Source of the DNA: Phyllobates terribilis
Lineage: Eukaryota
Assembly (NCBI RefSeq): GCF_046119375.1
Contig: NW_027362761.1
Coordinates: 736,994,001-737,058,000 of the forward strand
DNA length: 64,000 nt
Direction: 5' to 3'
In this document: in pieces, positions 8,969 through 37,552 of the stretch
Layout: each line of letters opens with the position of its first letter
Position numbering within the stretch: the stretch's first letter is position 1
Made by a program: the position numbers and the translations under genes
The notes under the pieces: generated by a model
Told to the model about the DNA's origin: nothing
Database searches by the model: none
The model's input: only the letters and a program-made list of their open reading frames with translations

Positions 8969-9019
8969 TGTCCAATCTCCTGATGATGTAGTTTCTGTTG
9001 TGAAACATGTAGGGGGACA
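8969..9019 (+). ncRNA. Minimal type-I hammerhead ribozyme-like motif with an intact core
   Basis: UGUCC-aau-CUC CUGAUGA [stem II] GAAAC AU GUA GGGGGACA. Stem III is the palindrome ACAUGU, stem I pairs UGUCC/GGACA and CUC/GGG. Stem II is imperfect. Confidence 0.65.
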
Positions 9020-9223
9020 TTTGCGATGTGTTTTAATTTTAATATTCATTATATTTGCTATACTCTTCATGAATAGTACCCCTGGGTGATATCCCATAGT
9101 TTGAGAGATTTAATAAATCTATTGGATAGTAATCTATCTCTCAAACTATGAAATAGCACCCTGGGGTACAATCCATGAATAGAATGGCAAATAGTGAATG
9201 TTAAAATTAAAACACATAGCACA

Positions 9224-9275
9224 TGTCCCCCCAACATGTTTCACTGCTGAAACGGCATAATCAGGGAATGGGACA
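9224..9275 (-). ncRNA. Mirror hammerhead-like motif (G8->U, probably inactive)
   Basis: Minus strand: UGUCCCAUUCC CUGAUUA UGCCGUUUCAGCAGU GAAAC AU GUU GGGGGGACA. Confidence 0.55.
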
Positions 9276-9884
9276 ATTGTGTATATTCTTGGTTGGTACT
9301 GTCCCATAGTTTGAGAGCTAGATTACTATCCAATAAATTAATTACAATTATATACAAGCAATTATGAATTTATTTAATGGGCACCTCCTAACATAATGTT
9401 TAAATTAATCTAATAAAAGTTATATTTTATTCACCTGTTAAGTGATGTGCCATTCAGTTGGGCTTTACCCCATAGGTTTTTGTATATATAAATGTATCCT
9501 TGCGGCCTGTTTTTTCTCCAATACTGTATACAAATAAATAACTAAAATTTGATCTATAACTCAAAAATGGACTTGTCTCCATTATTGTTTTTGCAGACAC
9601 ATTGATCGCATAAACAAGTACATGTGAATAGCACTATAGAATTTAATGGGAAGGTTTTCTAGATATGAAAATCACAGATGGAACACGTAAATGATTCAAT
9701 GACATCTAAATGAACCCCTATTCTGTTATAAAATCAGAAAACATCCTCATAGAATAAAACTCACCAGGATCAAACAAATTATGTATGCATTGACTGAAAT
9801 TATTAAGAGCGGGTCCAGAGGACGTAGCATCATGTCTGAACCCCTAATAATGAAAAACACTGTTTTTATCTTACAGAAAAGAAG

Positions 9885-10729
9885 ATGTGTGCAGCATTTA
9901 TGTTGATGATCTTTCTGTATATGGCTGTTAACACCAAAGGAGCCAGCCATCAGTGTAACAATATAGATGGTACTACACTTATTTGGTCAAATTTCAACAA
10001 TTGTTCAGATGTAATTTTAAAAAATAAAAGCATCAATGAAATTGTAATAAATGATCAAAGCTATTATGGTAGTGTCTCAAAACTGGATCTCTCCCACAAC
10101 AAAATTAAAGTTCTTCCTGGTGGATTTTTATCTAATGCTATTATATTGAAAGAAGTTCATCTACAAAACAATAATTTGGAAGATTTGCCAGAAAAATTTC
10201 TCAAAAACTCATCTAAGCTGCAAGTTCTTAACCTTGAAGGTAATCAACTGTCAACAATTCCTGCAAGTATTTTCCATGACACTCTTTATAACCTGACTGT
10301 AGACTGCCAGTGTAATTTGGTCAAGGACATAAACAATGCTTCAAAATACCCAAAACTTAATGCAATTTGCAAATTGTCTTCAGGGTGGACTAACCCACAG
10401 GATTTCTATGAAGAAAACTGTCGCAAACAATATATGGCCCTGTTCATTGTTTTACCAATATTGGTGATAGCTTTGATTGCTGGAGGAGTGGCTCTGTATA
10501 TGTGGAAGAGGAAGACAAGTTCATCAAGTCTAGAAAGCAAGAGTGCTGCAGACATGTCACCTGTTCATGGGCAACCACGCTACATGTCAACGAATATGGA
10601 AGGTAGTGCAACAATGGTAAATCCAGGCCAGAAACAAGATTATGAAAACGTTTTTGTTGGTTACTTGCCAACTACTGAAACAAAACCTTATGGCTATGGG
10701 AAAAATGAGCTTAAACCAGGCACTCACAG
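9885..10729 (+). CDS. LRRC25: LRRC25-like leucine-rich-repeat type-I membrane protein, first coding exon
   Basis: Signal peptide, three LRRs (LDLSHNKI, VHLQNNNL, LNLEGNQL), Cys-containing cap, TM segment ALFIVLPILVIALIAGGVALYMW, and cytoplasmic DYENVFVG like LRRC25 DYENMFVG. Acceptor TTTTATCTTACAG ends at 9876. Donor AG|GTAAGT at 10729/10730 (phase 2). Confidence 0.85.
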
Positions 10730-11632
10730 GTAAGTTTTGATTTAATCTCTGAGCCTTATGCTATTCCATAATATTACAGACTTCTTTTAACTATTTTTAT
10801 TAAGGTAACTTAATGGGTTGTCCCATCAGGCCATCTTTTTTCCATTCATTCTACTGAGGTACAACGTATTTAGAAATCACAGCAAGGGACCGCCAAAGAG
10901 AAAAGACTCTAAAAAGTGCCTCCCACACTGGAGAACTAAGTACAATCATGTATTGCAATGTATGAATCGCAGACTTTTTAAAAGGACACTATGTAATATG
11001 GTAATTAGGGCACACTCTGTCTCTGGTATCCTTGATGGTGGGTGTGATGAAGTTTCCGTCCACTGATGAGACATTTAATTGGCTTACTCCTGTAACAGTG
11101 CAATCATTAAAGGGTTAGTCCTGTATCACTCACTTCCACATCCAGAGATAAGTGATTTCATGTCTATTGATACCTGCAAGGATGTGTGCACACCTGGATA
11201 TATTGTGCACATGTCCCATTATAATAAACACATCATTAGAATTGGAAAATCAGGCTCATGTCCCGGCAGGTATCAGTAGACATACCTTAATCTGCTACAC
11301 TCACATCTCGATGCAAAGTGAGTGAGGCAGGACTATTCCCAACAAGGCACAGTACTTGTAAAATAAGGGCATACCAGCCACAAAATGCATTGGCTTAACA
11401 ATTTTAACATTACTGAAATGTCCAGTTAGCTAGATAGCTTCATATATGAACTGTATATGCATATAAATATGTATATACTAATCTATCCATCTAAAAAAGA
11501 AAAAGACAAAAGCAGCACCAGCAAAGTAGGGTGCAAAGCCTCCCAGGTACATACCAGTGCTCAAATATAGTAAAAAATTTGGAAGCAGCACACCATATTA
11601 TGCATAAAAAAGGGCTATTTAATAACCCATGA

Positions 11633-11672
11633 GGTGACGTTTCAGATCCAAGTGTGAGCTTTTCTCAAGCAA
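11633..11672 (-). ncRNA. Degenerate hammerhead-like motif (U3-A8 core) in a Penelope pLTR remnant within the LRRC25 intron
   Basis: Minus strand: GC UUGAGAA A AGCUC-ACACUUG-GAUCU GAAAC GUC. Followed by ATTAAA and a donor-like GGTGTGCTGC. Stem I is not conserved. Confidence 0.5.
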
Positions 11673-12069
11673 TATACAGGTGCATGTGCAGAGTATTTAA
11701 GATCTACCATTAGCAAAGTATTTAACAATTACAATAATACGAGCATATCATAATATCAAAACATGATATACAGTGCCTACAAGTAGTATTCAACCCCCTG
11801 CAGATTTAGCTGGTTTGATAAGATGCAAATAAGTTAGAGCCTTCAAACTGCAAACGAGAGTAGGCTTTATGAACAGAAGCATAAATCTTACAAACCAAAA
11901 AGTTATGTTGCTCAGTTGAATTTTATTAAATTTTAAACATAAAAGTGTGGGTCAATTATTATACAACCCCTATGTTTAATATTTTGTGGAATAACCCTTG
12001 TTTGCAATTACAGCTAATAATCGTCTTTTATAAGACCTGATCAGGCCGGCACAGGTCTGTGGAGTTATC

Positions 12070-14565
<2,496 letters not shown>

Positions 14566-16359
14566 TCATCTGGAACGGAGACCATTGCAGTGGAGTATGT
14601 TACTTATGGTATTGACTGAAACCAATGTCCCCATTGCCATGAGATATTCCCGGAGCTCCTTCCTTGTTGTCCTTGGGTTAGCCTTGACTCTTCGGACAAG
14701 CCTGGCCTCGGCACGGGAGGACACATTCAAAGGCTGTCCAGGCCGTGGAAGGCTAACAGTAGTTCCATAAGCCTTCCACTTACGGATGATGCTCCCAACA
14801 GTGGAGACAGGTAGGCCCAACTCCTTGGAAAGGGTTTTGTACCCCTTGCCAGCCTTGTGACCCTCCACGATCTTGTCTCTGATGACCTTGGAATGCTCCT
14901 TTGTCTTTCCCATGTTGACCATGTCTGAGTGCTGTTCACAAGTTTGGGGAGGGTCTTAAATAGTCAGAAAAGGCTGGCAAAAGAGATATTTAATCCACAC
15001 ATGTGAAGCTCATTATTCTTGGTGCCTGAACTACTTCTTAATACTTTAGGGGGACCAAACAGAATTCTTGTGGTTTGAGGGGTTGAATAATAAATGACAC
15101 TCTGAATTAACTTTTAACGTTTTTTAAAAAAATAAATAAATAAATTTGCTGCAGTGCATTTCCCACTTCCAGGCTGATCTACAGTACAAATGTCACAATG
15201 CCAAGTTAATTCCACATGTGTCAACCAGCTAAATCTGCAGGGGGTTGAATACTACTTGTAGGCACTGTACATACAGATTGTGTAAATACGCAGGAGTGAC
15301 AATAGTATAAAGTGCATATTAGTGGTACATACGACAATAGAATCATACAAGGATGAATAATATTTCAATTGATAATCAAAAATAGCTGTAGAAGATTATT
15401 ATATAACATGACTCACCCTATTCATATTAGCGCCGATATCGGCGTTCTATTATGCTGAATGCGCATGTCAGGAAGTAAAAAAACAAGGCAGAAAGAAAAA
15501 ACATCGTATCGCGCATGCGAGCTCACGCTCTGAAGTGTCCAGCGCCATCTTGGTATAGGAAAAGGTTTCTATTGAGGTTTTAAATGCCATCTTAATTAAG
15601 AGAAAAAGGTATCTAAGGCGTTTGCTTCGATTTACGCAATTAACGGCCCAATATGAAATATAAAACATATAAAACCAACCAGTGCTCCAGATATACAGTA
15701 CCTTCCACATGTTATATTAGAGTCCACTGACTCCTTCCTTACAAAAAAGTTACAGCGTCTGGGTGAGGAAGGTTTTTAACTGTTTTATAGACACATGCAC
15801 CTTGAAGTAGACTTTATTTAATCTGAAAACTAGTTTCCAAATGGAAATTGGCTATGGATTCACACCAGTTGGTACAGGAACATGCCCTACTAGCTTGGGC
15901 TGGTAACCTGTTAACCAAAGGAGCAGTGTGAGATATGCATCCTGTGAGGAACGCAATTCTCAACTTCAATTTCCAATTGGATAAGAAATCAATATTTTAG
16001 CCTTCATATATCAGATAATGTTCTCAGAAAGTTTGTTCACTTCGTGCATAATCTGTCCAAAGAAATGCTAAAAGGAGCCTTTTTGCTTATATAGAAAATC
16101 ATAGAAAAAAAGCATAGAATTGAGCAAAATATTTCTTATAAAGAAATAAAAAATGGAAAAAGGACATGCAACCATATAAATCTTTAACTCTTCATTAATG
16201 GGATGAGTCATGTATCTTAGGTAAATCCACAACAATTATGTAATCTGAAAAAGAATTAATACCTAATAGCAATACCACAAAAGGGAGAAAAATCCTATGT
16301 AGGAAATCATTGGAAAACAGCATTACTTATAAAATGACACTCAATTTGAAATCTACATT

Positions 16360-16795
16360 AACCATATGGTTTCAGTGTGTTTAATCTTCTTATCCATTGA
16401 AGCGCTTTAGTTTTAAGTAACTTGACTCTATCACCCCCTCTTCTCAAGGGGGAAACATGGTATATGATTTGAAATTTGCATTTTTTTTCAGAGTGTCCAC
16501 ATTTGGTACTCTGAGGAACAATTATGGATGTGATCAACCTTTTGCAGTGTCCACGTAATCTTTGGTTAGTAGGGGAAATGACATGGGACTTTAAGACAAG
16601 AATAAACCATCGTAAATATACATTATGTAAAAAGAGGTTGGATTTACTAGTGCCTAAACATTTTGTTGAATATGAACACTGAAAAAAATGTAACATTTCG
16701 AATCATTGACCATGTATCCCCCTTGAGAGGAGGGGATGATAGAGTCAAGTTACTTAAAATTAAAGAGCTTCAATGGATAAGAAGATTAATATATA
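16360..16795. mobile_element. Two head-to-head degenerate Penelope-type GIY-YIG C-terminal fragments
   Basis: Minus strand ...HVSPLRRGGDRVKLLKTKALQWIRRLNTLKPYG and plus strand ...HVSPLRGGDDRVKLLKIKELQWIRRL. Confidence 0.7.
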
Positions 16796-17003
16796 TACTA
16801 TATATACTGTACATGAGGATAGAAAATCATTTTGGCCGCAACTTAAGAAAAAACTGCAGGAAGGCGCGACCAATGGATGTTTATTGCAAAGACACTTCAT
16901 TTGATAATAACACTTTCCATGAGATTACTTTTTCAAATATATTCTTGATATGATTAGCATATGTTCGTGATCAACTTTAATACTGTTCTCTTTGTTTCAT
17001 CAG

Positions 17004-17175
17004 CAGCAAACATGCAGCAGAAGGCAAAATACAACTGGAAAGTGACGACAATGAGGCTGACCAGCCTATTTACACAAACACCCAGGGGATTTATTATAAC
17101 TACTCAGAACCTAGATTAATGAAAAGCAAGGGCAAAGAAGAAGAAGAAGATGTGTACATATTACCAGATCAGTAA
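17004..17175 (+). CDS. LRRC25: LRRC25-like last coding exon (not in the ORF track)
   Basis: Polypyrimidine tract plus CAG at 17001-17003. The phase-2 join reads SSKHAAEGKIQLESDDNEADQPIYTNTQGIYYNYSEPRLMKSKGKEEEEDVYILPDQ*, resembling the LRRC25 C-terminus as I recall it (QPVYCN...EEEYVIP). Stop TAA 17173-17175. Total 338 aa. Confidence 0.85.
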
Positions 17176-17188
17176 ATGAAAATCTCTC

Positions 17189-17584
17189 TTAAGGAGTTGT
17201 CCACTACTTTCACTACTTTTAAGATAAGGCATCAATGTATAATCGGTCGGGGTCCCGCATGCTGCACCCCCGCCGATCTGGTGATATCGGTGCCGGCGTC
17301 GCCGGCCGTAAGTCCTTACCTGCGGTTCTTGGCCATCAAGTTGTAGTGGCCGGTGCTTGTTGCTGCATATCTGCCTCCCATTCAGTTGAATAGGAGGCGG
17401 ATGTGCAGTACCCCGCGCTGGCCACTACAACTTGACGGCCAAGCACAGCAGGTAAGGACTTCCGGCCGGGACCGACATCGCCAGATCGGCGGAGGTGCCG
17501 GATCCGGGACCCCGACCAATCATACATTGATGCCCTATTCTACGGATAGGGCATCAATGTGAAAGTAGTGGACAACCTCTTTAA
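17189..17584. mobile_element. TTAA-flanked palindromic MITE (T2/Kolobok-like) just after the LRRC25 stop codon
   Basis: TIRs (A)GGAGTTGTCCACTACTTTCAC / GTGAAAGTAGTGGACAACCTCT with TTAA on both sides; the interior is self-complementary. Confidence 0.85.
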
Positions 17585-17663
17585 GAGCACGTACAATGGG
17601 TCAAGTATTATGTTAAGTCAATTATATACTTGTCTTGTTGTTTTGACATTTGTGACCTGTGCT

Positions 17664-17669
17664 AATAAA
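17664..17669 (+). promoter_or_regulatory. Candidate polyadenylation signal of the LRRC25-like gene
   Basis: First AATAAA downstream of the stop codon; another lies at 18087-18092. Confidence 0.4.
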
Positions 17670-17899
17670 TTACTATTCCTTCTGACATCACTATGAAGCT
17701 ACTATTAATTTTACACAATATGTATGCATTTGTAGCACAAAGTGCAAATTGTAGAACTAACATTCAGCTATTTCTTTGGTATTAAACATCAACTATGTCA
17801 TGCTTGTATAAAGTACAAAAAGGAAGTTTTTCCTGATGGGTTACTGACCGGTTACCATTTACAACTTATGCAACTATTATTTTAACATATTAAATTGCC

Positions 17900-18016
17900 T
17901 TAAAGGGATTTTCCAGGATGAAAAGAAAGGTCTGTGTGACTGCAGACTAATGAATTGTGCAAGTGCCAGTGACAATAGAGTGACTGCAGACTTTTAAATC
18001 TGGAAAACTCCTTTAA
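17900..18016. mobile_element. ~115-bp TTAA-flanked mini-MITE
   Basis: TTAA-AGGGATTTTCCAG ... CTGGAAAACTCCT-TTAA. Confidence 0.7.
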
Positions 18017-18068
18017 AATCATCAGAATGTGGACAATTCCAAAGGCAACACTGAACAGTTAACTTCCC

Positions 18069-18338
18069 ACTTAGTAATAGCAAACAAATAAAAGGAAGTT
18101 CAGCACATCCATCCGTTAGTAATATTTAAAAAATTGATTACTTTGGTCCATTTTAAAACAAATACAGGGGGCATTAAAATTTGATGATTAAGGGAGTTTT
18201 GCCGCCAGAAACGTATCCGATTTTAATGTTCCTGTATTTTTGTTTTTTAATGGACCAACAATAAAGTAACCAAATTTTTAAATATTACTAACAGATGGAC
18301 ATGCTGAACTTCCTTTTATTTGATTGTTAATGATGAGT
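18069..18338. repeat. AT-rich inverted repeat (~110-bp arms, ~40-nt loop)
   Basis: CAAATAAAAGGAAGTTCAGC...GTTAGTAATATTT pairs with AAATATTACTAAC...GCTGAACTTCCTTTTATTTG. Confidence 0.8.
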
Positions 18339-18930
18339 TTGCCAGTTGGATATGGCCCCCACCGTTTAGGACTATATGCAGCGGATTGCATCATTAGCAG
18401 TGTTGGTGAGCTTCTCCCTCTCCTTTTTTCCGTAACTTCCCACTTAATATTTATAGTTAGATATGTAGTAGAGACTGTATATAAGACAAAGTCTGTATAT
18501 ATTGTAAATAAGTCTCCTATGTCTTTTTTATTGTATCTTTACTAAAGCTACCAGTCAGGCAATTTATAGTGTCCAAACCATAGTCAGCAAGCCTGGCTGC
18601 ACAATAGCAGCTAGTTGTATATTTCTCGGAAATGCTCCAGGGTAACATAGTTAATATAGTTTGAAAATCCGACTGGCCATTTTTTCCCAGCACCGCTCTA
18701 GTTGATTAACAGGCCTTTCGCTTTGGTAGAGATCAGTCAATCCTCTGGAGCATCACTGGGAGAAGTCAGCCGGAAGCTGCATGGGACTAGTCTCATCTCT
18801 GGCTACGGTCCAAGGTCGGATCTTCAAACTATATACCTCGCTGTAATCATGCATCCACACTCTAATTCATGCTGCTTGTGTTTTTGAGAATCATGTGACA
18901 GGTTCCCTTTAAATTTATGATGGCATTGAT

Positions 18931-19170
18931 GACAGCATGGTGGCTCGGTTGTTAGCAATGATGCAGTGCTGAGATCCTGGGTTCAAATCCCACCAAGGAC
19001 AACATCTGCAAGGAGTTTGTATTTTCTCCCCATGTTTGAGTAGGTTTCGTCACACATTCAAAATACATACTGATAGGGAAAATAGATTGTGAGCCCCAAG
19101 GGGACAGTGCCAATAATGTCTGTAAAGCACTGTGGAATTAATGGTGCTATATAAGTGAGTAAAAAAAATA
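18931..19170 (+). mobile_element. tRNA-derived SINE (V-SINE-like) with an L2-type tail
   Basis: A-box TGGCTCGGTTG, B-box GGTTCAAATCC, V-domain-like GGAGTTTGTATTTTCTCCCCATGTTTG, tail GTAAAGCACTGTGG...GTGCTATATAA followed by an A-run. Confidence 0.75.
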
Positions 19171-19328
19171 AATCAATTTAGGAGTCCAGTAATTCAATAT
19201 AAAGCTCACCTAATATCTGTATGTGTCTATATGTAAGCAGCTCCAATCCAGAAAAAAGGCAATCAAACAAGATAGGACACTTTTTTTTAGTTATTGCATG
19301 TTATTCCCCCTTTATCATTATATAGTCA

Positions 19329-20515
19329 CTAGCTATTGAACCCATTCTACACCTGGGTGGTGAGCATTTTTATTGGTATATGGTCCCCCATTCTGGTACA
19401 TGCTTCCCCATCCTGGTATATGCTCCCCAATCCTGGTCCCCCATCCTGTTTTATGCTCCCCCATCCTGGTCCCCCATCCTGGTATATGCTCTCCCATCCT
19501 GGTATATGCCCTCCCATCCTGGTCCATACTCCCCCATCCTTGTCCATGCTCCCCCATCCTGGTATTTCCGCTCCCATCCTGGTCCCACATCCTGGTATTT
19601 GCGCCACCATCCGGGTATATGCACTCCCATCCTTATATATGCACCCCCATCCTTGTATATGCTCCCCCATTCTAGTATATGCTCCCCCATCCAGGTATAT
19701 GCTCCACCATCCTCCCCCATTCTGGTATTTGCTCCCCCATCCTGGTATTTGTGCCCCATCCAATAATTTGCTCCCACATCCTGGAAATTTGTGCCCCTAT
19801 CCGGGTCCCCCATCCTTGTATTTGTGCCTCCATCCTGTTATATGCTCCCCCATCCTGGTATTTGCACCCCCATCCTTGTACCCGATACTGGAATATGGTC
19901 CCCCACCCTGCTCCCCCATCCTGACATATGCTCCCCCATCCTGGTCCTCCATCCTGGTATATGCTCCCCCATCCATCCATAAATTAAATAAAAAAAAAAC
20001 ACTCCTACTCACCTTTCCATTGCTCCCCTGCAGCTCGTCGCCTGGGTTATTTTACTAAAATGGTGCCGGAAACAGCGCCTGCATAGCGCGATTTCCGGCG
20101 CCATTTGTGCAGTGTCGTCAACAAAATGGCGCCGGAGTGCGCGCATGTGCATTCCACACTGTCCTGCGCCATTTTGTTGAAGACACACTGCAAATGTGTC
20201 TTCACTAAAATGGAGCCGATATCACGCTATGCGTAGGCGCTGATTCATTACGCCACACTCCTTCCCCGGCCTCTGGCCTGAACAGAGGTGCCGCAGCCAC
20301 ACTCCTCCCGGGCAGGTATGTGCTTATGGCACCGGAGATCACGGTATGCGTTCAGTGCCTACATATTCCGCGATCTCCGACGCCACACTCCTCCACCCTT
20401 TTACCTGTAACGGGTGTATGTTTTCTTCTGTCTAGGGCCAGACTGGCAGGCGCATGTGCAGGCGCAGTCTATAGAGGCTTCAGACAGAAGGACACATCCC
20501 TGGTTATATTATAGA
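19329..20515 (-). mobile_element. Non-autonomous Helitron carrying a 19-bp minisatellite
   Basis: On the minus strand it starts TC (A|TCTATAATATAACC) and ends with hairpin CCCA-GGTGTAGAA-TGGG ... CTAG|T. Inserted between A and T with no TSD. Confidence 0.75.
19345..19975. repeat. 19-bp minisatellite (CCCCATCCTGGTATATGCT)n, roughly 30 degenerate copies
   Basis: Visible 19-nt periodicity; it explains the Pro-rich pseudo-ORFs in all frames. Confidence 0.9.
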
Positions 20516-21939
20516 TATAGCCATATATATAGCCATATAGCCAAGAGATCAAATAAGTTCAGCTTACAATATACTTTTTCATCAGACACTCACTAGGTTT
20601 CTACATTAGCTTCTTCTCATACCCGTGGGATAGGAGCAATCCCGGCCATTGTTTTAGTTGCACATAACAGATATGGTTTATATCAGGGAGATATCTTGAA
20701 AATGGTGCACAACTGGGGAATAGCTGTCACTGGCAGAGTTGCTAAATGTCAAGAAATTCCAGGACAGTCCATAAAAATAAGGCACTTTTTTGCTCTCTCT
20801 GCAAAAAATATTTAAGGCGTTCATGATATTTTTGAAGCTGAAGAAACTTATACAGTTTAATTTTATTGTAATTATCATCATTTTAAAGTTTACAGTGAAT
20901 GCAGCTTATGTCTTCATATCAGAATTATGGGTTGTAGACATGTATCACTGCTAATCACGACTTATTATGGTTTTCAATGTAAAAAATACTGTCTGTCCGT
21001 GATTTTTTTGGTTAGCTGTCCAGAAAAAATAAAAAGTCAAGTTGGCAACTTTGGTCCCTGGCGGTTGAATGCTGGCATCCTCTGTGTGCTCTCTACTTAA
21101 GTTCTGATAAGCCACAAGCTGCCTGTGACCTACAAATATGTATTGAGGCAAGAAGCCAATTAATCTATAACCAGCCATTGTTCTGAACTTGATCCGCATT
21201 TTGGGGATAGTTGAGATGAATGACAACTGGTGGGCCCCCCTTGTCTTGTGGGCAGGTAGCAGTAACACTCCCTCCCGCTGCAATCATTGCTCAACTGCTA
21301 GTGGCCAGGGTGAAGACTGGGATGTACAACCCTCAATTATATGCAAAGTCTTTTTAAGTCAGATTAAAAATATTAAAAATAAAAAAATGTATTTTTTTCA
21401 TAACATATTACTTTTAAGATGTGTGCAGAAGGTGAATGTATGAAATATATGCGGAAGGTAAAATGTATGTAGAAGGTAAAGCAGGAATCTCCTTTGGTTA
21501 TATGATAAAATACCTGACTTTTTAGGTGATAATTTGACTTGATTTTTTGTATGTAACCTAAATTCTGCACTGCAAAACTGATGTTTTGTGTTGTATACAA
21601 TCTAATGTTTTCAATAAAGCAAATAAAATAAGTATGTAAGTATGCATTTATGTATTTGTTAAAGATTAAAATAAAACAGACATAAGATAACCATCCAAAA
21701 TAGTGAGTTGCCCTCTTTCGTCAATCTGTCCAGCTGCATGCTAGAAACCAGATAAACTAAAATACAGTTAGTTATCATGAGGCTCATGGAGCTTCGTGGA
21801 AGTGTGTAGCCTGGTGAGACTATAGGTGTTGCCTTTGTCTCCAAATTTTAATTCCGGTTCGAGAATGGTGCAGTTATGGACATAGACACTGCATGGTTCA
21901 CTTGAAACATCATTAGCAGGCAGGCAAGTATACCAGTTA

Positions 21940-23033: not shown

Positions 23034-23271
23034 CATGCCGGTTGCATGGATTTATATAGTGTGACCAAGTTGTCAAGCACTTTTCCAAGTGATGCTAAAA
23101 TCACTTGAAAACGCGCTTGATAACCCGCATGCAGAAATGCATGCAAAAACGCTTGACAAACGCTTCTACCTGGCAGGAAAAACGCATGTAAAATCTGCAT
23201 GCGTTTTTCCTGCCAGTGAGATGCAGAAAAGATATGCAGCATTTCTGCATTGTGGGTACTTAGACTTAGCA
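23034..23271 (-). mobile_element. Truncated MITE piece homologous to 59480-59720
   Basis: Reverse complement shares TTGTCAAGCACTTTCCAAG, TATATAAATCCATGCAACCGGCATG and other blocks. Confidence 0.7.
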
Positions 23272-24627: not shown

Positions 24628-24629
24628 AT

Positions 24630-24936: not shown

Positions 24937-25229
24937 TAGTGATGAGCGAGCACTAAAATGCTCGGGTGCTCAAAGCTCGGGTCGAGCACATTGGAATACT
25001 CGGGTGCTCGACCCGAGCAACCAGCCCAATGTAAGTCTATGGGAAACTCGAGCATTTTTCTGGCGGTCCCCCCCGGCGGTCTGCAGAAGGTCAAAAATTG
25101 CCCAAATCGATGGGAACAGTGCTCAATTAAACGTCAGGCAGGCCGAATATATAGACAGACAGGCAGGCAGGGTATATAGGAGGGTGCATGAAAAACATAG
25201 CAAGGCACTTGGAACACACTAGTGCCCTC

Positions 25230-25650
25230 CGATTTTCATGCACCCTTCTCTTTAAAAAAGCCGTCCGGCAATTCAGCAGTGGCATACACCGGTACCCGAC
25301 AATTTAGAACAGAAAGAATAGAGCATCACACATAGATTAGATAGATAGAAACATGTCAGTCACATATATAATAAGAATAGTGACAGCGTTGGTTACTGTA
25401 CTTGTCATTTAGTGTTAAAATAAAGGATTTATTAAAAAAAAAATAATAGTATTTTCATGCACCCGTCTCTTTAAAAAAACCGGCCGGCAATTCATCTTCG
25501 GTACCCGACAATTTAGAACAGAAAGAATAGAGCATCACACGTAGATTTGATAGAAACATGTCAGTCACATATATAATAAGTACAGTGACAGTGTTGGTTA
25601 CTGTACTTGTCATTTAGTGTTAAAATAAAGGATTTATTTAAAAAAAAATG
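25230..25650. repeat. ~210-bp direct repeat x2 in the hAT A subterminal region
   Basis: GTACCCGACAATTTAGAACAGAAAGAATAGAGC at ~25292 and 25501. Confidence 0.85.
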
Positions 25651-28600
25651 GTGTGGGGTTCCCCGTAATTTTAGTCTCTAGCGGAGGTTAAGCAGACGGC
25701 TGGGGCAGATGTTTGAAGCCTGGGAAGGGGGTAATACCCACGGAGCTTCCCAGGCTACTAATATCAGCCCCCAGCTGAATACCTAGCCTTTACTAGCTAT
25801 TAAAATGGGGGACCTCCCAAAAAATGACGTGGGGTCCCCCCTATTTTAATAGCTAGCAAAGGCTAGGCAGACAGCTGGGGGCTGATATTAATAGCCCAGG
25901 AAGGGTGCCATGAATATTGGCCCCCTCCCAGGCTAGAAACACTAGCCGTCAGCCGCCCCAGAAATGGCAGATCCATAGGATGTGCCAATTCTGGCACTTA
26001 GCCTCGCTCTTCCCACTGCCCTGTAGCGGTGGCAGTGGGGTAATAGGGTTGGGGTTGATGTCAGCTTATAATGCCAGCTGACATCAAGCCCAGGTTAGTA
26101 ATGGAGAGGCATCTATAAGACACCCCCATTACTAACCCCATAGTCAAAGTTAAAAAAAACACAAACACCCAGAATAAAGTCCTTTAATTGAAATAAAGAC
26201 ACATTCCTTTAATGTTCTAAATTAAACCCTACTTACCGTATCACCCATTCCAGCTGAAGCCAACGATCTCCTGCAATAAAAATAAAATAATAAACCAACC
26301 TCATCCTTACCTTTCCATGATTCCCAGGACAGCTTCAGCTCTGCTACATTGACATGACAGGCTGGAGCGCAGCAGAACGCTGCCATCCAGCTTGCCATGC
26401 CGCAGACATTGAGAAGCTCCTCAGTGAAGCTCCTCAGTGTCTGGCTGTGACGGCATCCAGATGAGCCGAGTTCATGTCCAATGAACTGAGCTCACCTCAT
26501 GCACGTCACTGACAGCGTGGGAGAATTCTCCTGCGCTCACCGCTTGAGCAGGAGACTCCTCCTCTTCTTCTAGGACAACCACCTCCTGCCGCACGCTATT
26601 CAAAGTCTTCTACAGCATGTAGATGACCGGAATAATGATGCTGATGATGGCATTGTCAGCGCTAACTAGTTTAGTAGCCATTTCAAAACTGTGCCGGACA
26701 CGCGCGCGGGACAGCGAGGGGCCGGAGAACACGCGCACCACCAAGATAAGAGAAGAAGACACTACGTTTGGAATAAGGGGAAGAGACAAAGAGCATTTAT
26801 CCAAATCTCAAAATAAATGAGAGATTAGGTAAAATGCGCTCAATCCCAACAGCATAACAGAATAACCTAGTGGGGCATCCATACAATAGAGTTCACCATA
26901 AAATCTCATACATAGGTCCCTTATATTCCCAGGGGATCACTCAAAAGGTATATAAACCAGATACATTAGTACAGTTCAACGTGAGTCAATTTCCCTCCAA
27001 GGGAAAGAAAAGGACAATGAGGAAGTCTTGAAAGATGCTCCATCTTGTCAGCTGTAGAGTGTCTTGAACATCAAATTAAAGGAGGTCCATAAAGAGGGTG
27101 CACAATGACAATTAGTTAGTAGCCCAACATCTAAAAGAGTGAAGAAAAGCACAAAATTAAAAACAAAAGTAAAAACGAGCTAAAAACTGAAGCACGGACT
27201 GAAAGATCAGAGAAAGAGTAACACTGAGGGAGAGCACCACAAGACAAAAAGGCCATATCATAAAAATGAGGAGAAACCCAAATTTTCATTAAGACCACGC
27301 GGTACCAGGGTATCCAGGACGCTAATCCATCCGGCTTCCTTTTGCGCAAGGCAAAGTTTATAGTCACCGCCCCGAGAGCCCAGATGCACCACATCAATGC
27401 CACGCACCATCAGGCTGCGTGGGTCACAACCATGAACTTTTTTAAAATGTCGTGGTAGTGTTCTAAGCTCCCGGGGGTCCGACACAGATTTGGCTGCGCC
27501 AATGTCCCGCACATGCTCCCGCACCCGAATCCTTAGTTCCCTCGTAGTAAGTCCTACGTAGATTTTCTGGCAACTGCACGTGGCATAATAAACCACGTGT
27601 GTTATACTACAGGAGATGTATTTCGAAATTTGGTAGGTGCTGGAGCCATCCGAAGTCGTAAAGGATGAGCAGCGAAGGACATTGGCGCAAGCCAAGCAGT
27701 GGCCACATGGATAGGATCCAACCCTGGGCCGGCGTGACCCAAAAGGGTTAGGTGCTGGTGGGATGTAGTGACTAGACGTAACCAGATCGCCCAAAATTTT
27801 GGCTCATCTGGCAGTCATGAGTGGAAATTGTCCCACCACGTCCCTAAGGGAGGGCTCCGCGCCAAGAACATTCCAATGTCGCGAGATGACCCGCCTCATA
27901 GTTTCCCACTCATGGTTATAGGTGGAAATGAAGCGGGTCCTCTCAGGGAACCCAGAAGGGGGTCTCCGAGAGGGGTAAAGGAGATGACTGCGGGGGGTGC
28001 TGCGGGCTCTACCGTAGCCACGGCCAATGCATCGATTGCTGTAACCTCTCTGTTTGCAACGTTCCGTCAGGTCCGCCGCCTGCTTCTCAAATTTAGCATC
28101 CGTAGAACAGATGCGCTTAATCCTAAGGAACTGTCCGACCGGGACGGCCCTAATTGTTGAAGAAGTATGTCCAGAGGCAGCATGCACCAACGAGTTCACA
28201 GCCGTGGGCTTCCTGTAGATGTCAGTCTGGATGGAGGAGTGTGAGTCCACCTCCAGAGTGACGTCCAGGAAGTCCATACGTGTGAGGCTGTGAATATACG
28301 TGAGTTTAATCCCCCACTCATTGGCATTTAGCTGTCTCATGAAGTCGTCAAGCTCCTCCACAGAACCCCGCCAAAAGAATAAGACATCATCGATATACCT
28401 GAGCCATGTCACAACCTGGCTGGCACAACATCGCCCCCAAAAATTTCCCTCTCCCACGCACCGAGGAAGAGGTTTGCATACGAAGGCGCACAGGCCGCAC
28501 CCATGGCTGTGCCACGTCGCTGCAGGTATACCGTGTCTTTGAAAAGAAAATATTTATGGCAAATGATAAAGCGGAGGAGCTCGAGGATAAATTCACGTGA

Positions 28601-29378
28601 AGGGCCGTCCAGGTCGGAGGTCCCAAGGAAAAGACGAGCAGACGCTAGGCCAAGGTCATGACCAATGCAGGTATACAGACTCTCGACATCGGCCGTGACA
28701 ATGATAGTGCCCGGTTCCAAGGAGACGCCATCAACCCTAGTAAGGACGTCCGTCGTGTCCTTGACAGAGGATGGAAGGGTCTCTACAAGTGGTCTCAAGA
28801 GACTATCAACATATTGAGAGATTGGACCACAGAGACCCCCAAACCTGACACGATCGGACGTCCTGGAGGGCTGGTGGCGTCCTTGTGTACCTTAGGAAGT
28901 AGATAAAAGGTAGCTGCTTTGGGGGAACGTGCAGTCAGAGCCTCCACAGTCCTCTTATCTATAATACCCCTCTCGCAGGCCCGAGCCAGGATTCCCTGTA
29001 GGGTAGCGGAGAAGGAGGTCGTGGGATTGTACGGCAGCCTAGAGTAAGTGTCCTTATCTCTCAGCTGTCGCAATGCCTCCCTCTCATATTTATAGTGGGG
29101 CCACAGGACGATGTTTCCTCCCTGGTCTGTTGGTTTAATAACCATGTCCTTAAGTTTTTTGAGTTAACCAGGGATTGAAGCTTGAAGAGGACAATTTGCA
29201 TATTCCAGGTGCCTTCTGGGAAAAGCGAAGAGTCTCCTTCAGCTAGAAGATCGTTGGGTACAGCCGGGACCAGCTGCTTGGAAAGCATCGCCAAACCGCC
29301 AAAATTTGTTTAATTTGTTTGTCCTAGGGTATCACAAGAAAGAAGACAGACATCAAGTCAGCAGGGACAAGGAGCAGC

Positions 29379-30337
29379 ATGGCAGATGTGACAACCTACA
29401 TGGTGAGCTGCAACATGTGCTACATGTTCACAGATCGACCAGAAGCTGAAACCAACTTCACCTGCCAGAAGTGTAGACTACTGGCTCTTTTAGAAGAAAA
29501 GGTGCGGGGACTGGAAGAAAGAATTGCGACATTAAAACTCATCAAGGAAAATGAAGACTTCCTGGACAGAACAGAAGCGTCACTACTGGTCACGGAAAGT
29601 CAAGGAAGCATCAGAGAACCTCCAGAGGCAGACAAGTGGAGGCAAGTGACCAAAAGAAGCAAGAAGACCATGGAGACACCACCAACCACACAACTGAGAA
29701 ACAGATTCCAAGGACTAGTGGAGGACGAAGATGGCACACCTAAGGATGAGGAACTACCAGCAAGCAAAAAAGGAAAGAGCACCCAGAAACACCCAGAAGC
29801 GACAAGAAAAAGGACAGCCAAGAAGGGAAGAAGAGTGGTGGTGGTGGGAGACTCACTACTGAGAGGAACAGAAGCAGCTATCTGCAGACCGGACATAACC
29901 GCAAGAGAAGTATGCTGCCTCCCAGGGGCAAAGATCAAGGATGTTACCGATAGGATACCGAAGCTCATCAGTTCCAAGGATGTCCACCCATTTCTTCTGA
30001 TACATGTTGGCACCAATGACACGGCAAAGAAGGACCTACCGACAATCTGCAAGGACTTTGAAGCATTGGGGAAGAAAGTAAAAGAACTGGATGCGCAGGT
30101 AGTTTTTTCTTCTATCCTTCCAGTAGACGGGCATGGCGTCAGGAGATGGAACAGGATCCTTGAGGTGAACAACTGGCTGAGACGATAGTGCAGACAACAA
30201 GGATTTGGATTCCTGGACCACGGTGTGAATTACCTCTATGACGGACTCCTTGCCAGAGACGGACTACACCTCAACAAACCCGGGAAACACACATTCGCCA
30301 GGAGACTCGCAACACTCATCAGGAGGGCGTTAAACTA
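29379..30337 (+). pseudogene. CR1 ORF1 (Cys zinc finger, coiled coil, SGNH esterase) with one premature TAG at 30186-30188
   Basis: CNMC...CQKC, GDSLLRG, HVGTND. Reading through the TAG gives CRQQGFGFLDH...RDGLHLN...RRALN*. Confidence 0.9.
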
Positions 30338-30349
30338 GAAGAAGAGGGG

Positions 30350-33281
30350 ATGGGAAGAAAAACGCCGGACACGATCATGCAACCAGAGAACATACTAATG
30401 AAAGATATGAAGTGCGACAAAGAAGGTCCAAGACAAGATACTTGGAAGGGAGGTAAGAAAATTTCTAATACAATCCACAGGGAGAAGATTGGAACAAAAC
30501 AAAATCGTGTAAACTGCGTGCTAGCAAATGCCAGGAGCCTGACAAACAAGATGGATGAACTGGAAGCAGAAATATCTACAGGTAACTATGACATAGTGGG
30601 AATAACCGAGACATGGTTAGATGAAAGCTATGACTGGGCAGTTAACTTACAGGGTTACAGTCTGTTTAGAAGGGATCGAAGAAGTCGGAAAGGGGGTGGA
30701 GTCTGTCTATATGTAAAGACGTGTCTAAAGCCTACAATACGGGAGGATGTATGGGAGGGAAATGAGGAGGTCGAGTCCTTATGGGTGGAGATACATGGGG
30801 CAAAAAACAATAATAAAATTATCATAGGAGTCTGTTATAAACCACCAAATATAGCAGAAACCACGGAAAGTCTATTAATGAGACAAATAGACGAAGTAGC
30901 AAAAAATAATGGGGGACTTCAACTACCCCGATATAGACTGGGAAACCGAAAGCTGTAGATCTCAGAAAGGAAACAGGTTTCTGTCAATTATCAAAGACAA
31001 TTATTTGTCACAACTTGTGCAGGAACCAACTAGAGGGACGGCCCTTTTAGACTTAATATTAACTAACAGGCCAGACAGAATAACTGAGGTGCAGGTCGGG
31101 GGGCACCTGGGAAATAGTGACCACAACATTATACAATTCCACATGTGCTTCAGTAGGGTGCCCAGCAAGGGAGTCACAAAAACACTGAACTTTAGGAGGG
31201 CAAAGTTTGATCAGCTAAGAGATGCCCTTCACCTTATAGACTGGGATAGTATCTTTAGTAATAGGAGCACGGATAGAAAATGGGACATTTTCAAAACAGT
31301 CCTACATAGTCACTGTAGAAGGTACATACCTTATGGGAATAAAAGGGCTAGGAATAGGAGGAAGCCAATGTGGCTAAATAAGGAAGTCAAGAGGGCAATG
31401 AAAAACAAAAAAAGGGCTTTCGGTAAACTTAAACAAGAAGGCAGCGAGGAAGCGCTAATATCTTATAGGGAAAAAAACAAAATCTGTAAGAAACAAATAA
31501 GAATAGCAAAAGAGGAGACAGAGAGACTAATTGCCAAGGAAAGTAAAACGAATCCCAAACTGTTCTTTAACTATATAAACAGTAAAAGGATTAAAACTGA
31601 TGGAGTTGGCCCATTGAAAAATAACCTGGGTAAAATCATAGAGGGCGATGAGGGTAAAGCAAACCTACTCAATAGCTTCTTCTCCACTGTTTTCACAAAA
31701 GAAAACAATTTATCGGAGGAAATGCAGAGTGATAAAGTAAATGCTCCGCTAAATATCACCCACCTAACCCAGGGGGAAGTTCAGAAACGCCTAAATAATA
31801 TCAAAATAGACAAGTCACCAGGCCCAGATGACATACACCCCCGGGTACTAAAAGAATTAAGTAATGTGATAGACAGGCCGCTGTATCTTATATTCAAGCA
31901 CTCTTTATGGACAGGGACTGTCCCACTAGACTGGCGCCAAGCAAATGTGGTACCAATATTCAAAAAGGGGTCTAAAAGTGACCCTGGGAACTATAGACCA
32001 GTCAGCTTAACGTCTGTTGTGGGTAAATTGTTTGAAGGATTTCTTAGAGATGCTATTGTAGAATATCTTAATGATAATAACTGTCTAACTCCATATCAAC
32101 ATGGATTCATGAGGGATCGCTCCTGCCAAACAAACCTGATCGCCTTCTACGAGGAGGTGAGCTCACAGCTGGACTGCGGAGAGTCAGTGGATGTTGTATA
32201 CCTTGACTTCTCCAAAGCGTTTGATACCGTGCCACACAAAAGGTTGGTATATAAAATGAGAATGCTTGGTCTGGGGGATAATGTGTGCAAGTGGGTAAAT
32301 AGCTGGCTGAGTGATAGAAAGCAGAGGGTGGTTATCAATGGAGTAAGCTCAGGGGGTGTCAGGGTTACTAGCGGGGTGCCTCAAGGGTCTGTCTTGGGCC
32401 CTATATTATTTAATATATTTATTAATGATCTAGTGGAAGGGTTGCATAGTAAAATAGCAATATTTGCAGATGATACTAAACTTTGTAAAGTAGTTAATAC
32501 AGATGAGGACAGGGCACAGCTACAGGAGGATTTAGATAAATTGGGGAGTTGGGCCAAAAAATGGCAAATGGGGTTCAATGCCGATAAATGTAAGGTCATG
32601 CACATGGGAAAGAAAAACAGCAGTCACCCATACATATTAAATGGGAAACCGTTGGGGAAATCTGACATGGAGAAGGACCTGGGCGTCTTGGTTAACAGCA
32701 AATTAAATTGGAGTGCCCAGTGTCAGGCAGCAGCTGCGAAGGCAAATAGAGTCATGGCATGCATCAGAAGAGGAATAGGGGCATATGATGAGAACATTGT
32801 TCTTCCTCTGTATAAAGCGCTGGTAAGGCCGCACTTAGAATATTGTGCACAGTTCTGGGCTCCGGTGCTCAGGAAAGACATATTGGAGCTAGAGAGGGTA
32901 CAAAGGAGGGCAACTAAGGTAATAAAGGGAATGGAGGGACTAGAATACCCAGAGAGGTTGTCAAAATTAGGCCTATTTACATTGGAAAAGAGAAGGCTTA
33001 GGGGAGACCTCATAAACATGTATAAATACATCAGGGGGCAGTACAGAGATCTCTCCCATGACCTGTTTATACCAAGGATAGTGACAAAGACGAGGGGGCA
33101 CACTATGCGTCTGGAGGAAAGGAGGTTCCTGCACCAGCATAGAAGGGGATTCTTTACGGTCAGAGCCGTGAGACTCTGGAACTCTCTGGGAGAGGAAGTG
33201 GTGATGTCCAACTCACTTAATGAGTTCAAGAGAGGCCTGGACGCCTTTCTTGAGAACAATAAAATTACATCTTATGCTTAG
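30350..33281 (+). pseudogene. CR1 ORF2 (APE endonuclease + RT) with one frameshift near 30909
   Basis: ANARSL, GITETW, GDFNYP, SDHN, YLDFSKAFD, GVPQGSVLGP, FADDTK; 790 aa open after the frameshift. Confidence 0.93.
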
Positions 33282-34693
33282 TTAATTAATCCAGGGATTT
33301 AATCTTACTGCCAGATTGGTGTCGGGAAGTGAATTTTTCCTCAGTGATGTAAATTGGCCTATACCTCATGGTTTTTTTGTTGCCTTCCCCTGGATCAACG
33401 CTGCGGAATAGCTGCAGTGCACAAGAAATAGGCTGAACTGGATGAACGCTTGTCTTTTTTCGGCCTTATAAACTATGTAAATATGTAACTATGTAACTAT
33501 GAGTTGTTGAATCGCTTGACGTTGGGCGGAGGTTAAATTGTCAATCTTTCTCCGTGTGGAGAGTTTTATAAAATCCTCCGCCACTAAGTTGACAAAAATT
33601 TCCACTGCCGGACAAATAGACAAGGGAGGGAACCTCGTTGATTTGGGGTTCCTAATCTGTGGTAACCCACCTGTGGGAGGAGTCGTTTGTTTCAAAAAGA
33701 GGTCCTCCAGATGTTGTAGGGCCTCCTCCTCCGCCACCACCGGGTCATGATCACCATCCGACCTGAAATGGAGTTTTTTTAGAATCAGTTTCCGAGCAAA
33801 CAGATGGAGGTCCTTAAGGGCCGTGAAATAGTCAAAAGAATTTGTAGGGGAAAATGACAGGCCAATACTAAGGACCTCCATCTGTGTCTCAGTCAAAACA
33901 TGATTGGTTAAGTTCATAACACGGAGCCCCCCCCGGGGATCACCAACCTGGTATGGGGTTGTCCGCTTCCTCCTATTGTTCGGTCTCGTTTGGATACGTT
34001 CAGTTAGTTGAGTAAAGGAGCCACCCTGGGAGTCCACGCTAGTAACTGGTATCTGATTCTCACTAGAGGTTCCAGAGGCATTTGAAGTGGACCTGGACCG
34101 TACATGTGAGTTGTTGCGAGACCTAGGCCTTCGATTTTCAACTGGTGATCGCCACCGATACACTCTATGGGTGAACTTATCCTGTGTATCGCGTTGAAAT
34201 TTTTTTATTTTCATTGTTTGGATTTCTTTAACAAGTTTCTGACAATCCACGTCAACCTCCTCATTAAGTTTCTTAAGGTCATCACTAGATAGATCCTTCC
34301 TAAGTTGTCCTTGTAGGAGATCAATCTCTAATTCTAACTCCCGAAGAGATTTTTCATTCTGCTCTTTGAGGAGACCCAAAAAGCGCAGAGAGCAGGTGTT
34401 AGCCAGAGATTCCCAGTTATTTTTAAATGACTCATCTTCAATTTTAAAAGAAGGAAAGATCAGTATACTCAGGCCTCTGGGGATCAGAGCTTTCTCAATA
34501 TATTTGGTTAGAAAGGCATGGCTCCACCAGGTTCGACATCTCCGTTTAATTAAGACCTTGAAACTGGTAAAGCTCTCCCTCAGTCTCTGATCTGTGTCCA
34601 GCACCACCAAACTCCCATTGCTAGATAAGTCATCTAACTGCGCGAGCCAAGTGGTGTCTCGTGCACGAAAATCCATTATGGGCCAGGCAAGAA

Positions 34694-35269
34694 CTGTAAA
34701 AATACAGAGAAACATATATGTAAGAAGAAAACTGGCCAAATGCATAATATAAGACGAACCATGGTGCTAAGACAATTTGTCAAGCACCAGGTTCGTATTG
34801 CCTACTCATTAGTAACATGCAAAAAAAGGGGAGAACACAAGAGCAACATGGCAAAGAGACAAAATCTTTATTAATAATAAATTACCAAAGTGATAAAAGT
34901 TATACAAAAATGACAAGGCAAGGGGATAAGGAGAGAAGGTGCCAGAGACAAGGCATTTCCTGGAAATCAAACGCTGGGCAGTCCAAACCTTATGGGTACA
35001 TGTAGGTATAGAGACAATGGAGTAAGACATGGATATATAACCAAATAGATCCGAGGGTATGGACAGTCCATCAGTAAAGAGACCACCCCACTATGAGACA
35101 GAAAACAGCTCGGCAAACATAAGAATAAATATCATGTGCAAATTGCAAACAGTAAATGGTAGCCGAGATAAGATTCAAGTCTGAAAATTAGGTATATACA
35201 TATCTTACACCATATTTATATGGGTTGCAGTGTCCAACAAGTACCCAGAGTATGGTTTAAATTACTCAC
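34694..35269 (-). other. Putative spliceosomal intron in the Penelope 5' leader
   Basis: Donor GG|GTGAGTAA at 35269 and acceptor TTTTTACAG ending at 34694, 17 nt before the ATG at 34676. Confidence 0.55.
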
Positions 35270-35345
35270 CCAGCCAAAATAAACACAGGTGAGGGAGAGC
35301 CCGCGGATGCCAGGAAAGCCCCAGAAAGTGCTGCCAGTAAGGAAT

Positions 35346-35386
35346 GCGCCCCGACGCGTGTTTCGCCTATCTTTATCAAGAGGCGC
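35346..35386 (-). ncRNA. Minimal type-I hammerhead ribozyme with the U3-A8 covariant core in the Penelope leader
   Basis: GCGCCUC UUGAUAA A G-AUAGG-C GAAAC ACGC GUC GGGGCGC: 7-bp stem I, 1-bp stem II, short stem III, GUC cleavage triplet. Confidence 0.75.
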
Positions 35387-37028
35387 TGCATAGTGCACCT
35401 AAAAGGACCTGATTATATACGCCCCCATCCAGTCACATGATTCAGTGAGAGAGGGGGACTCATTGGTGTATAGCGGCGCGTGTGCCCGGAACCACGCCCC
35501 CCCGCTGCACGCGTCACAGCCGTCAGGTCCCGACACGCGCCCGGGGGTGCGCCCAGGAAACGCCCCCAGAGGCGTGCCAGGGACGGAGAGACAGCCGGAC
35601 ACGCGCGCGGGACAGCGAGAGGCCGGAGAACACGCGCACCACCAAGATAAGAGAAGAAGACACTACGTTTGGAATTCTAACTAGTTTAGTAGCCATTTCA
35701 AAACTGTGCAGAAGGGTACAGAGGTCCTTAATATGGTCCCATTCCATAAACGTGATATGCCCCACGTCCGTACTGCATTGGATTAGGCTATACGACATGA
35801 CATACTGTGTCAGGGCTCGTGCCATAGTTGCTGCAACATGTGCAGAGTGGAATTCCACTGCGTCGGCAACATTGCATATCAACCTGTTAACTGACATAGA
35901 CAAAGACCTCTGTATTGATGCAAATCGATGACATGAGGCATGCGAACGGCGGAAGTGAGCACACAGCTTCCGTACTTTCTGAAGCAGTTCATCCAGGCCG
36001 GGATAGTGGTGAAGAAATCACTGTACCACCAGGTTGAGGACGTGAGCCATGCAAGGCACGTGTGTGAGTTTGCCTCGGCGTAGGACCGCCAACAGGTTCA
36101 CACCGTTATCGCACACGGCCTTTCCTGGCTCCAGGTTCAGCGGAGACTGCCATTGCTGAAACTGAGCCTGGAGAGCCATCCACAACTCTTCAGCTGTATG
36201 ACTGCGATCTCCAAGGGATATTAAATTGAAGACTGCCTAATTGCGGTGAGCACTGGCTGCGCAGTACGGAGGTGGTGTTGATTCGCTCAGCACTGTTGAA
36301 TGCGTGTCTCGTTAAGGCAGAGGTTGATTGCGCAGGTGGAGGCCCTAGAGGAGGTGGAGGATGCAGAAGCAGTGGAGGAAGTGTGAAATACAGAGGTTTC
36401 TTCTGCAAGCCTTGGGGATTCCAAGATTTGTGGAGCAGCCCCTTCCCAGACTGTCCCCACAGCCACCAGAGTCACCCAGTGCCCAGAAAGCGAGATGTGA
36501 CGCCCTTGGCCATGCTTACTCGTCCAGGTGTCTGTGGTTAAATGCACCTTGGCAGATATAGATTTAGTCAAGGAACGGGTGATGTTGTCTGTGACATGCT
36601 GGTGTAGCGCAGGCACAACTTTCTTAGAGAAGTAATGGCGACTGGGCAACTGGTACTGGGGGACTGTGATGACCATCAACTTTCGGAAACAGTCTGTATC
36701 TACCGTCTGAAAGGCAGCATTTCCGTGGCCAACTGATTTGAGATGGTGGAATTCAATTTCTTAGCTTTGTCATGTGCAGGATGAAACAATCTTTTACGTG
36801 ACCACAACTGCGGGACCGAGGGCTGGCTGCGGTGCTGAGAGAGGGCGGAGTACCAAGCTTATTCCTCCTTCCACCACAACCTCTCTTTTTCCCACTCATG
36901 TTGCTCAGATACTGCAGTAGGAGCACGCTATTAGCAAGACAAAATTACATATTTTCCTCTGCAACAGTTCTGCACACCTGAATTTCAGTGGCACTAAATG
37001 ACAAGGTAAGATATGTCTTCCTGTATAA

Positions 37029-37521
37029 TCACAAGCAAGAATAGAAGGAAAGGCAGCACTCACCCAGTCTTCTTTAAAACGTTCCTTTATTTTTGTGTGC
37101 GGAGCATTTCAGCGTGCAGCTTTGGACTGAGACCCCGAAGGGTATGCGGGGGAGAGGAAAAAAGGGACAACGGCCGTTTCGCTGCCTTCCGGCGCTTCAA
37201 TGGGACCCGTTGACTTTGGACCCGTTGAAGCGCCGGAAGGCAGCGAAACGGCCGTTGTCCCTTTTTTCCTCTCCCCCGCATACCCTTCGGGGTCTCAGTC
37301 CAATGCTGCACGCTGAAATGCTCCGCACACAAAAATAAAGGAACTTTTTAAAGAAGACTGGGTGAGTGCTGCCTTTCCTTCTATTCTTGCTTGTGATTGA
37401 AATATTTCTTGGATGTGCACCACCGTTTAAGTCTTGAAGCACACAGTCTGAATTATGCCCTGGTGATTGATCCTCTGAAAAAAACAGCGTGGTGCCAGAA
37501 TGTTTCTCTTGCATTTGAACT
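37029..37521. mobile_element. Palindromic Penelope pLTR-derived mini-insertion
   Basis: 174-bp arms 37027-37200 and 37225-37398 with about 2 mismatches. 19-bp duplication GATATGTCTTCCTGTATAA at 37010-37028 and 37522-37540. AATAAA at 37334 and GGTGAGT at 37361. Confidence 0.8.
37218..37260 (+). ncRNA. Hammerhead-like motif at the palindrome centre (core mutated)
   Basis: GGAC CCGUUGA AG C-GCC-GGAA-GGC-AG C GAAAC GGCC GUU GUCC. Stem III is the palindrome ACGGCCGU. Core differs from CUGAUGA at two positions. Confidence 0.5.
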
Positions 37522-37552
37522 GATATGTCTTCCTGTATAACATTACTAACCG

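Follow-up and report, generated by a model that had tools for sequence, protein, structure and literature searches.

The DNA examined here is a stretch of 64,000 nt from the poison frog Phyllobates terribilis (NW_027362761.1, positions 736,994,001-737,058,000, forward strand, without N), referred to below as the window. It has the character of transposon-rich animal DNA and contains five hammerhead-like motifs, numbered sites 1 to 5, together with a Penelope-like element (PLE), a type of retroelement in which hammerheads have been described. A preliminary description of the window had picked out these motifs as strings of GAAAC followed by a short stem III, and all five strings were found where it had placed them. 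GAAAC is followed by ACAUGU at 9002 (plus strand, site 1) and 9242 (minus strand, site 2), by ACGU at 11643 (minus strand, site 3), by ACACGCGU at 35364 (minus strand, site 4) and by ACGGCCGU at 37245 (plus strand, site 5), the last with a mirror at 37180 (minus strand). The motifs and the insertions around them are the following.

8750-9542, no strand assigned: palindromic insertion of 793 bp that holds sites 1 and 2 (arm alignment, target duplication)
8969-9019, plus strand: site 1, a formally complete Penelope-type mini-hammerhead (descriptor match, permuted-core control)
9224-9275, minus strand: site 2, which mirrors site 1 from the opposite palindrome arm (arm homology)
11633-11668, minus strand: site 3, UUGAGAA ... 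GAAACGUC strings (string match)
26695-35675, minus strand: Penelope-like element (reverse transcriptase and GIY-YIG homology, terminal repeat, target duplication)
29164-33500, plus strand: long interspersed nuclear element (LINE) of the APE/reverse transcriptase type inside the Penelope open reading frame, limits approximate (homology)
35346-35386, minus strand: site 4, a hammerhead-like motif in the Penelope leader (sense orientation, descriptor with relaxed helix II)
37029-37521, no strand assigned: insertion of 493 bp made of two inverted copies that face outwards (palindrome, target duplication)
37218-37260, plus strand: site 5, a three-helix scaffold (helix layout)

As strings, these motifs are not more frequent than expected. 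The two strands of the whole window together have 126 copies of GAAAC. GAAAC followed by AC..GU and H was observed 32 times, and dinucleotide shuffles of the window, used as the background for motif counts, gave 35.9 +/- 5.8. The density of the motifs had been read as the sign of a large reservoir; the string that they share is not enriched in the window. The perfectly palindromic subset of the same string is in excess (10 observed, 4.4 expected), partly because mirrored or tandem copies count twice; three pairs are such copies. Searches for the core alone also gave chance levels, with 3 observed and 3.9 expected for CUGANGA-N7-25-GAAA and 9 observed and 6.0 expected for UUGANAA-N7-25-GAAA. 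Further occurrences of GAAAC with a palindrome, at 15837, 18208, 25348/25553, 50275 and 52417, were rejected as candidates, as the core box is absent upstream of them.

A more specific search depends on the descriptor that is used. Our own first descriptor did not permit an unpaired base after A9; it found only 8980-9011, and this once the helix II requirement was dropped, with matches equally frequent in the shuffles. Barring that base made site 1 look like a chance-level match; the descriptor was replaced with the Penelope mini-hammerhead form taken from PMC4209133, which allows it. With this full descriptor, 8980-9011 on the plus strand is the sole match in the window, and 0.00-0.03 matches are expected per shuffled window. 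In a second control, the real sequence was kept and the core letters were permuted to give decoy descriptors; with helices I and II of at least 4 bp, just one of the 540 core descriptors matches, namely the true one.

Site 1 consists of the core CUGAUGA, one unpaired U, GAAA, the palindromic ACAUGU and A17. Its helix I can be read either as 4 contiguous bp or as 3 and 5 bp flanking a 3-nt bulge. It has the highest composite score (24, with 0.02 expected). The real window has 32 scaffolds with GAAA and all three helices (17.3 in shuffles), and among these site 1 carries the full set of 6 core letters. By two different null models, 0.00-0.04 sites per window should have 6/6 core letters and all helices. 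Site 2 keeps 5 of the 6 core letters (core CUGAUUA), and its helix II has 4 bp with one mismatch. The letter that has changed is G8, now U; position 8 is required for hammerhead catalysis, and the change would be disabling. The 793-bp insertion in which both sites lie is bracketed by an identical 14-nt target duplication (8736-8749 and 9543-9556), and its arms are 77-90% complementary. A PLE origin of this palindrome is plausible. Two further observations were made on its structure. At 8890-9344, the hammerhead-like motif of each palindrome arm lies between the halves of an inverted repeat of 44-58 nt, so that in an RNA from a single arm a long stem would form with the motif in its loop. In addition, the arms differ by 10-23% though the 14-nt duplication is intact.

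The element that holds site 4 is firmly identified, and with it the link between this site and Penelope. On the minus strand, 26695-35675 contains an N-terminal open reading frame (34745-33489), reverse transcriptase homology (29163-27882) and a GIY-YIG domain (27554-27261). For the last, Pfam gave a weak match that did not pass the cut-off (E 0.003). With tblastn, frog PLE proteins carrying RVT_1 cover 34733-33501, 29163-27882 and 27554-27261 at 47-80% identity, the closest being those of poison frogs, with Phyllobates terribilis at 80%, then Dendrobates and Ranitomeya. The two copies of the terminal direct repeat, 82 nt each (26693-26774 and 35594-35675), are identical at 81 of 82 positions, and those of a target duplication of 33 nt (26662-26694 and 35677-35709) at all 33. 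A reverse transcriptase with a C-terminal GIY-YIG domain, terminal redundancy and a long target duplication, by which PLEs are recognized, are thus all present. The element is near full-length and looks young because of the 33/33 duplication and the 81/82 terminal repeat.

The leader of this element contains site 4, in sense orientation; the motif begins approximately 30 nt past a TATATAA box and is followed approximately 80 nt on by a GGTGAGT string. Site 4 has a helix I of 7 bp, the core UUGAUAA with the U3-A8 pair, an unpaired A, GAAA, the imperfect palindrome ACACGCGU and C17. Over 35413-35266 (minus strand), CCAAT and TATATAA boxes occur immediately upstream of the motif and GGTGAGT downstream, and this layout resembles the published internal promoter and intron of the 5' untranslated region of Penelope. 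Two observations concern the history of the element. The LINE at 29164-33500 (plus strand), which has an ORF1 with weak esterase/OSK-like matches, an APE endonuclease and a reverse transcriptase, entered the Penelope open reading frame after Penelope had landed. Penelope itself landed within the repeat at 35609-37022. This repeat is very high-copy, with a summed contig depth of 5e4-4e5 in the same-species run and at least 80% likeness in two other species.

Site 5 is a three-helix scaffold with a helix I of GGAC/GUCC, an unpaired A, GAAA, the perfect 8-nt palindrome ACGGCCGU and U17. Its 5-bp helix II is closed by a G-C pair, includes one bulged A and is capped by a GGAA loop. The core, CCGUUGA, differs from the consensus by U4C and A6U and so keeps 4 of the 6 letters; in the mirror copy (37165-37207, minus strand), the core is poorer and helix I is absent. 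The insertion is bracketed by an identical 19-nt duplication (37010-37028 and 37522-37540), and its arms, 37027-37207 and 37218-37398 (181 nt each), are 98% complementary, with a further 123 nt at the right. Within the right arm, site 5 occupies the inner end. Support for this site comes only from its context, that is, the 19-bp duplication and the inverted copies; a PLE origin of the insertion is plausible, and the motif may be of hammerhead descent, or may not be. The arm also contains CTGGGTGAGT approximately 110 nt past its GAAAC, and two short satellites, with units of approximately 104 nt and 127 nt, occupy 37529-38461 directly past the palindrome.

At site 3, helix I is absent and helix II is weak, and no repeat, duplication or inverted repeat was found around it. 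As it has neither a helix I nor a repeat context, site 3 is taken as a chance match.

When the five sites are set side by side, GAAA followed by a palindromic 15.2-16.2/loop 3 segment, U16.1 and H17 is present in all of them, the palindrome being perfect in sites 1, 2, 3 and 5 and imperfect in site 4. The first core box (C3 U4 G5 A6 N7 G8 A9, or U3-A8) fits sites 1 and 4, formally also site 3, and does not fit sites 2 and 5. A single unpaired base between A9 and 10.1 can be read in sites 1, 2, 4 and 5, which are all four of the motifs in a PLE context, and G10.1-C11.1 is present in sites 4 and 5. The helix I lengths are 4, 4, 7 and 4 bp for sites 1, 2, 4 and 5, and site 3 has none. BLAST and Smith-Waterman comparisons among the three insertion families, and of these with the Penelope ends, gave no similarity, and it is because the flanks share no sequence that the families can be called unrelated. 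The preliminary description had counted at least four such families; the dissimilarity of the flanks was borne out, and just two families are supported.

Many of these features are known from minimal type I hammerheads of PLEs (Cervera & de la Pena 2014, PMC4209133). Their hallmarks are an unpaired base between A9 and 10.1, G10.1-C11.1, a short helix I, a palindromic 15.2-16.2 segment and the U3-A8 swap, and the minimal form has a long helix II (at least 4 bp, typically 6-8) and a helix I of 4-5 bp or more (PMC4209133). Individual sites described here share the core (CUGANGA or the U3-A8 form), the unpaired base before helix II, a GAAA that leads into a short palindromic helix III, or a short helix I. 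They are also alike in their location, either in a PLE leader or pseudo-long terminal repeat (pLTR) or dispersed as singles and opposite-strand pairs, and in the occurrence of many unrelated consensus families per amphibian genome (PMC4209133). Opposite-strand pairs of PLE hammerheads lie 100-700 bp apart, and Xenopus tropicalis has approximately 9,000 mini-hammerheads in many consensus families, including such pairs and the U3-A8 swap (PMC4209133). The sites differ in that the descriptor is satisfied here by site 1 alone; the other four each deviate from it. The insertions can also be compared with animal non-LTR retrozymes (Cervera & de la Pena 2020, PMC7229834; Li, Clavereau & Pollet 2026, bioRxiv 10.64898/2026.07.22.740005). 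These non-coding repeats, just 150-400 nt in length, contain type I hammerheads; they descend from PLE pLTRs, and amphibians have them in abundance. In Xenopus, 57 retrozyme families related to Penelope pLTRs have been described (bioRxiv 10.64898/2026.07.22.740005). Retrozymes are arranged in head-to-tail tandem and can give circular RNAs, whereas the two short insertions here are inverted and so give no unit-length RNA between two sense ribozymes. A large and diverse frog reservoir of Penelope hammerheads is therefore already published (PMC4209133; bioRxiv 10.64898/2026.07.22.740005), and the suggestion of an overlooked system is not upheld.

Taken together, the interval is best explained as the remains of PLE retrotransposition, with three unrelated insertions and one chance string rather than five working ribozymes, and a probability of about 0.65 is assigned to this explanation. 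PLE insertions are known to include inverted copies truncated at the 5' end and to have long duplications or tails (PMC8557442), and the lengths of the two target duplications, 14 and 19 bp, suit retroelements and not typical DNA transposons. In active PLEs, tandem transcripts carry the motif in their pLTR or leader; two copies on the same strand pair via helix III, which is short and palindromic, and cut after position 17 (PMC4209133), probably with assistance from the protein of the element. Self-cleavage would not be expected at the loci described here, since none of them has two same-strand hammerhead copies and an RNA transcribed across either palindrome would form a long hairpin.

Several results weigh against this explanation. 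None of the Rfam hammerhead models (Hammerhead_1/3/II/HH9/HH10; Rfam release 15) gave a match, either in the whole window at gathering score and at E<=10 or, with laxer filters and E<=10, in the sub-windows 8700-11800 and 35000-37600 (approximately 3 kb each). These models have the same catalytic core strings as site 1, yet no site reached E<=10, and the palindromes matched just hairpin-like microRNA look-alikes. Of the 5 bp in the helix II of site 1, four are G-U and one is A-U, and G10.1-U11.1 stands in place of G-C. Sites 1 and 2 face the centre of their palindrome, unlike the usual layout of inverted PLE copies, and neither palindrome has sequence similarity to the local PLE. Approximately 2 of the 32 real scaffolds should reach 4/6 core letters by chance, which places the core of site 5 at chance level, so that this motif alone is not significant. 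At site 4, helix II has 7 nt with one G-C pair, and the published descriptor thus failed; a match is obtained solely if a helix II of 1 bp is allowed. With the helix II requirement dropped and a helix I of at least 7 bp, few permuted-core descriptors match (3 of 180, the true one included), which speaks for the site, but this test was framed post hoc, when the motif had already been seen. Thermodynamic folds of single and paired copies favoured the hammerhead fold at no site, and these are not used as evidence.

Some of these results would suit another account, in which no site is derived from a hammerhead. The motifs would be chance strings among hairpin-rich remnants of transposons, and the palindromes would be fold-back elements, or ones like miniature inverted-repeat transposable elements, that have no relation to Penelope. 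The silent Rfam models, the palindromes without similarity to the local PLE, and the chance-level counts of the core and of GAAAC with stem III all agree with such an account, as does the finding that three-helix scaffolds are about twice as frequent in real DNA as in shuffles. This account nevertheless seems decidedly improbable in view of site 1, whose complete core and helices are hardly ever met under either null model and whose mirror keeps most of the core. It also leaves aside that site 4 is sense-oriented in the very part of a proven PLE, the leader, in which motifs of this kind would be expected (PMC4209133), and that the target duplications suit retroelements.

The retention of function is the other point on which the origin of these motifs from PLE insertions could be read differently. 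Judged from their letters, three of the four motifs in a PLE context appear to carry defects at positions that matter. According to established mutational work, hammerheads lose most of their activity when helix II is shorter than 2 bp or when U4, A6 or G8 is changed. Conversely, several of the motifs could be working non-canonical ribozymes, the form at site 4 being the functional one of its family, active with a protein or a partner copy, and dimers of site 1 cutting in trans. As the Penelope element looks young, the motif of site 4 probably had its present form when the element moved, and the U3-A8 pair is a known swap that preserves pairing (PMC4209133). PLE hammerheads are also weakly active alone, and in an Anolis PLE, cleavage needed the element's protein and was dispensable for insertion in vitro (PMC11167929). 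This last result cuts both ways, as PLEs that transpose without hammerhead cleavage leave young copies that do not imply a working ribozyme. Comparisons between species bear on the same question. Contigs of four public sequencing runs were placed on 34700-37700, where the high-copy repeat at 35609-37022 dominates the tables; in two other species, among the matches listed, the sole matched bins of the leader and the palindrome are those that hold the motifs. In one of these two species, again among the matches listed, most copies lack the bulged A of site 5 helix II. These cross-species matches are hints only, and they are counted in favour of the preferred explanation as well. Since a helix II of one pair lies outside every published descriptor, the mutational background points to lost activity, and no locus has two sense copies together, the retention of function in several motifs is considered unlikely. 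More specifically, the Penelope element may have moved with a U3-A8 hammerhead whose helix II is a single G-C pair, as a natural and functional 'minizyme-like' variant that uses a protein or a second copy, and this seems very unlikely. The explanation preferred here, in which site 4 would descend from a functional hammerhead and be inactive in its present form, is retained.

Other features of the window lie outside these insertions and are listed below.

75-977, plus strand: LINE reverse transcriptase fragment
9885-10733, plus strand: open reading frame of a leucine-rich-repeat gene
12640-13617, minus strand: Ty3/gypsy chromodomain-integrase fragment
13933-14559, minus strand: Tc1/mariner DDE_3 fragment
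50035-53367, minus strand: hAT transposase (BED finger and dimerisation domain)

Two GC-rich long hairpins, at 8094-8299 and 23163-23223, are sub-threshold look-alikes of plant or animal microRNAs in Rfam and are probably the ends of inverted-repeat transposons.

Penelope hammerheads of this sort have been described since 2014, and the sites reported here are ordinary further examples whose number had been overstated. The proposed link to Penelope is firm for site 4 and plausible for sites 1 and 2 and for site 5; it does not extend to site 3, which has no repeat context. Spotting motifs at the level of strings, as GAAAC with a short palindrome, thus over-calls hammerheads: of the five, one is complete (site 1), two are defective relatives (sites 2 and 4), one is ambiguous (site 5) and one is a chance match (site 3). 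Beyond annotation, the meaning of these findings is slight, namely that this frog genome carries Penelope-derived hammerhead motifs of unrelated families, as in Xenopus. The remaining oddity is an apparently recent Penelope element bearing a U3-A8 motif with a minimal helix II; if the 'minizyme-like' form of site 4 were true, it would widen the known limits of the hammerhead fold.

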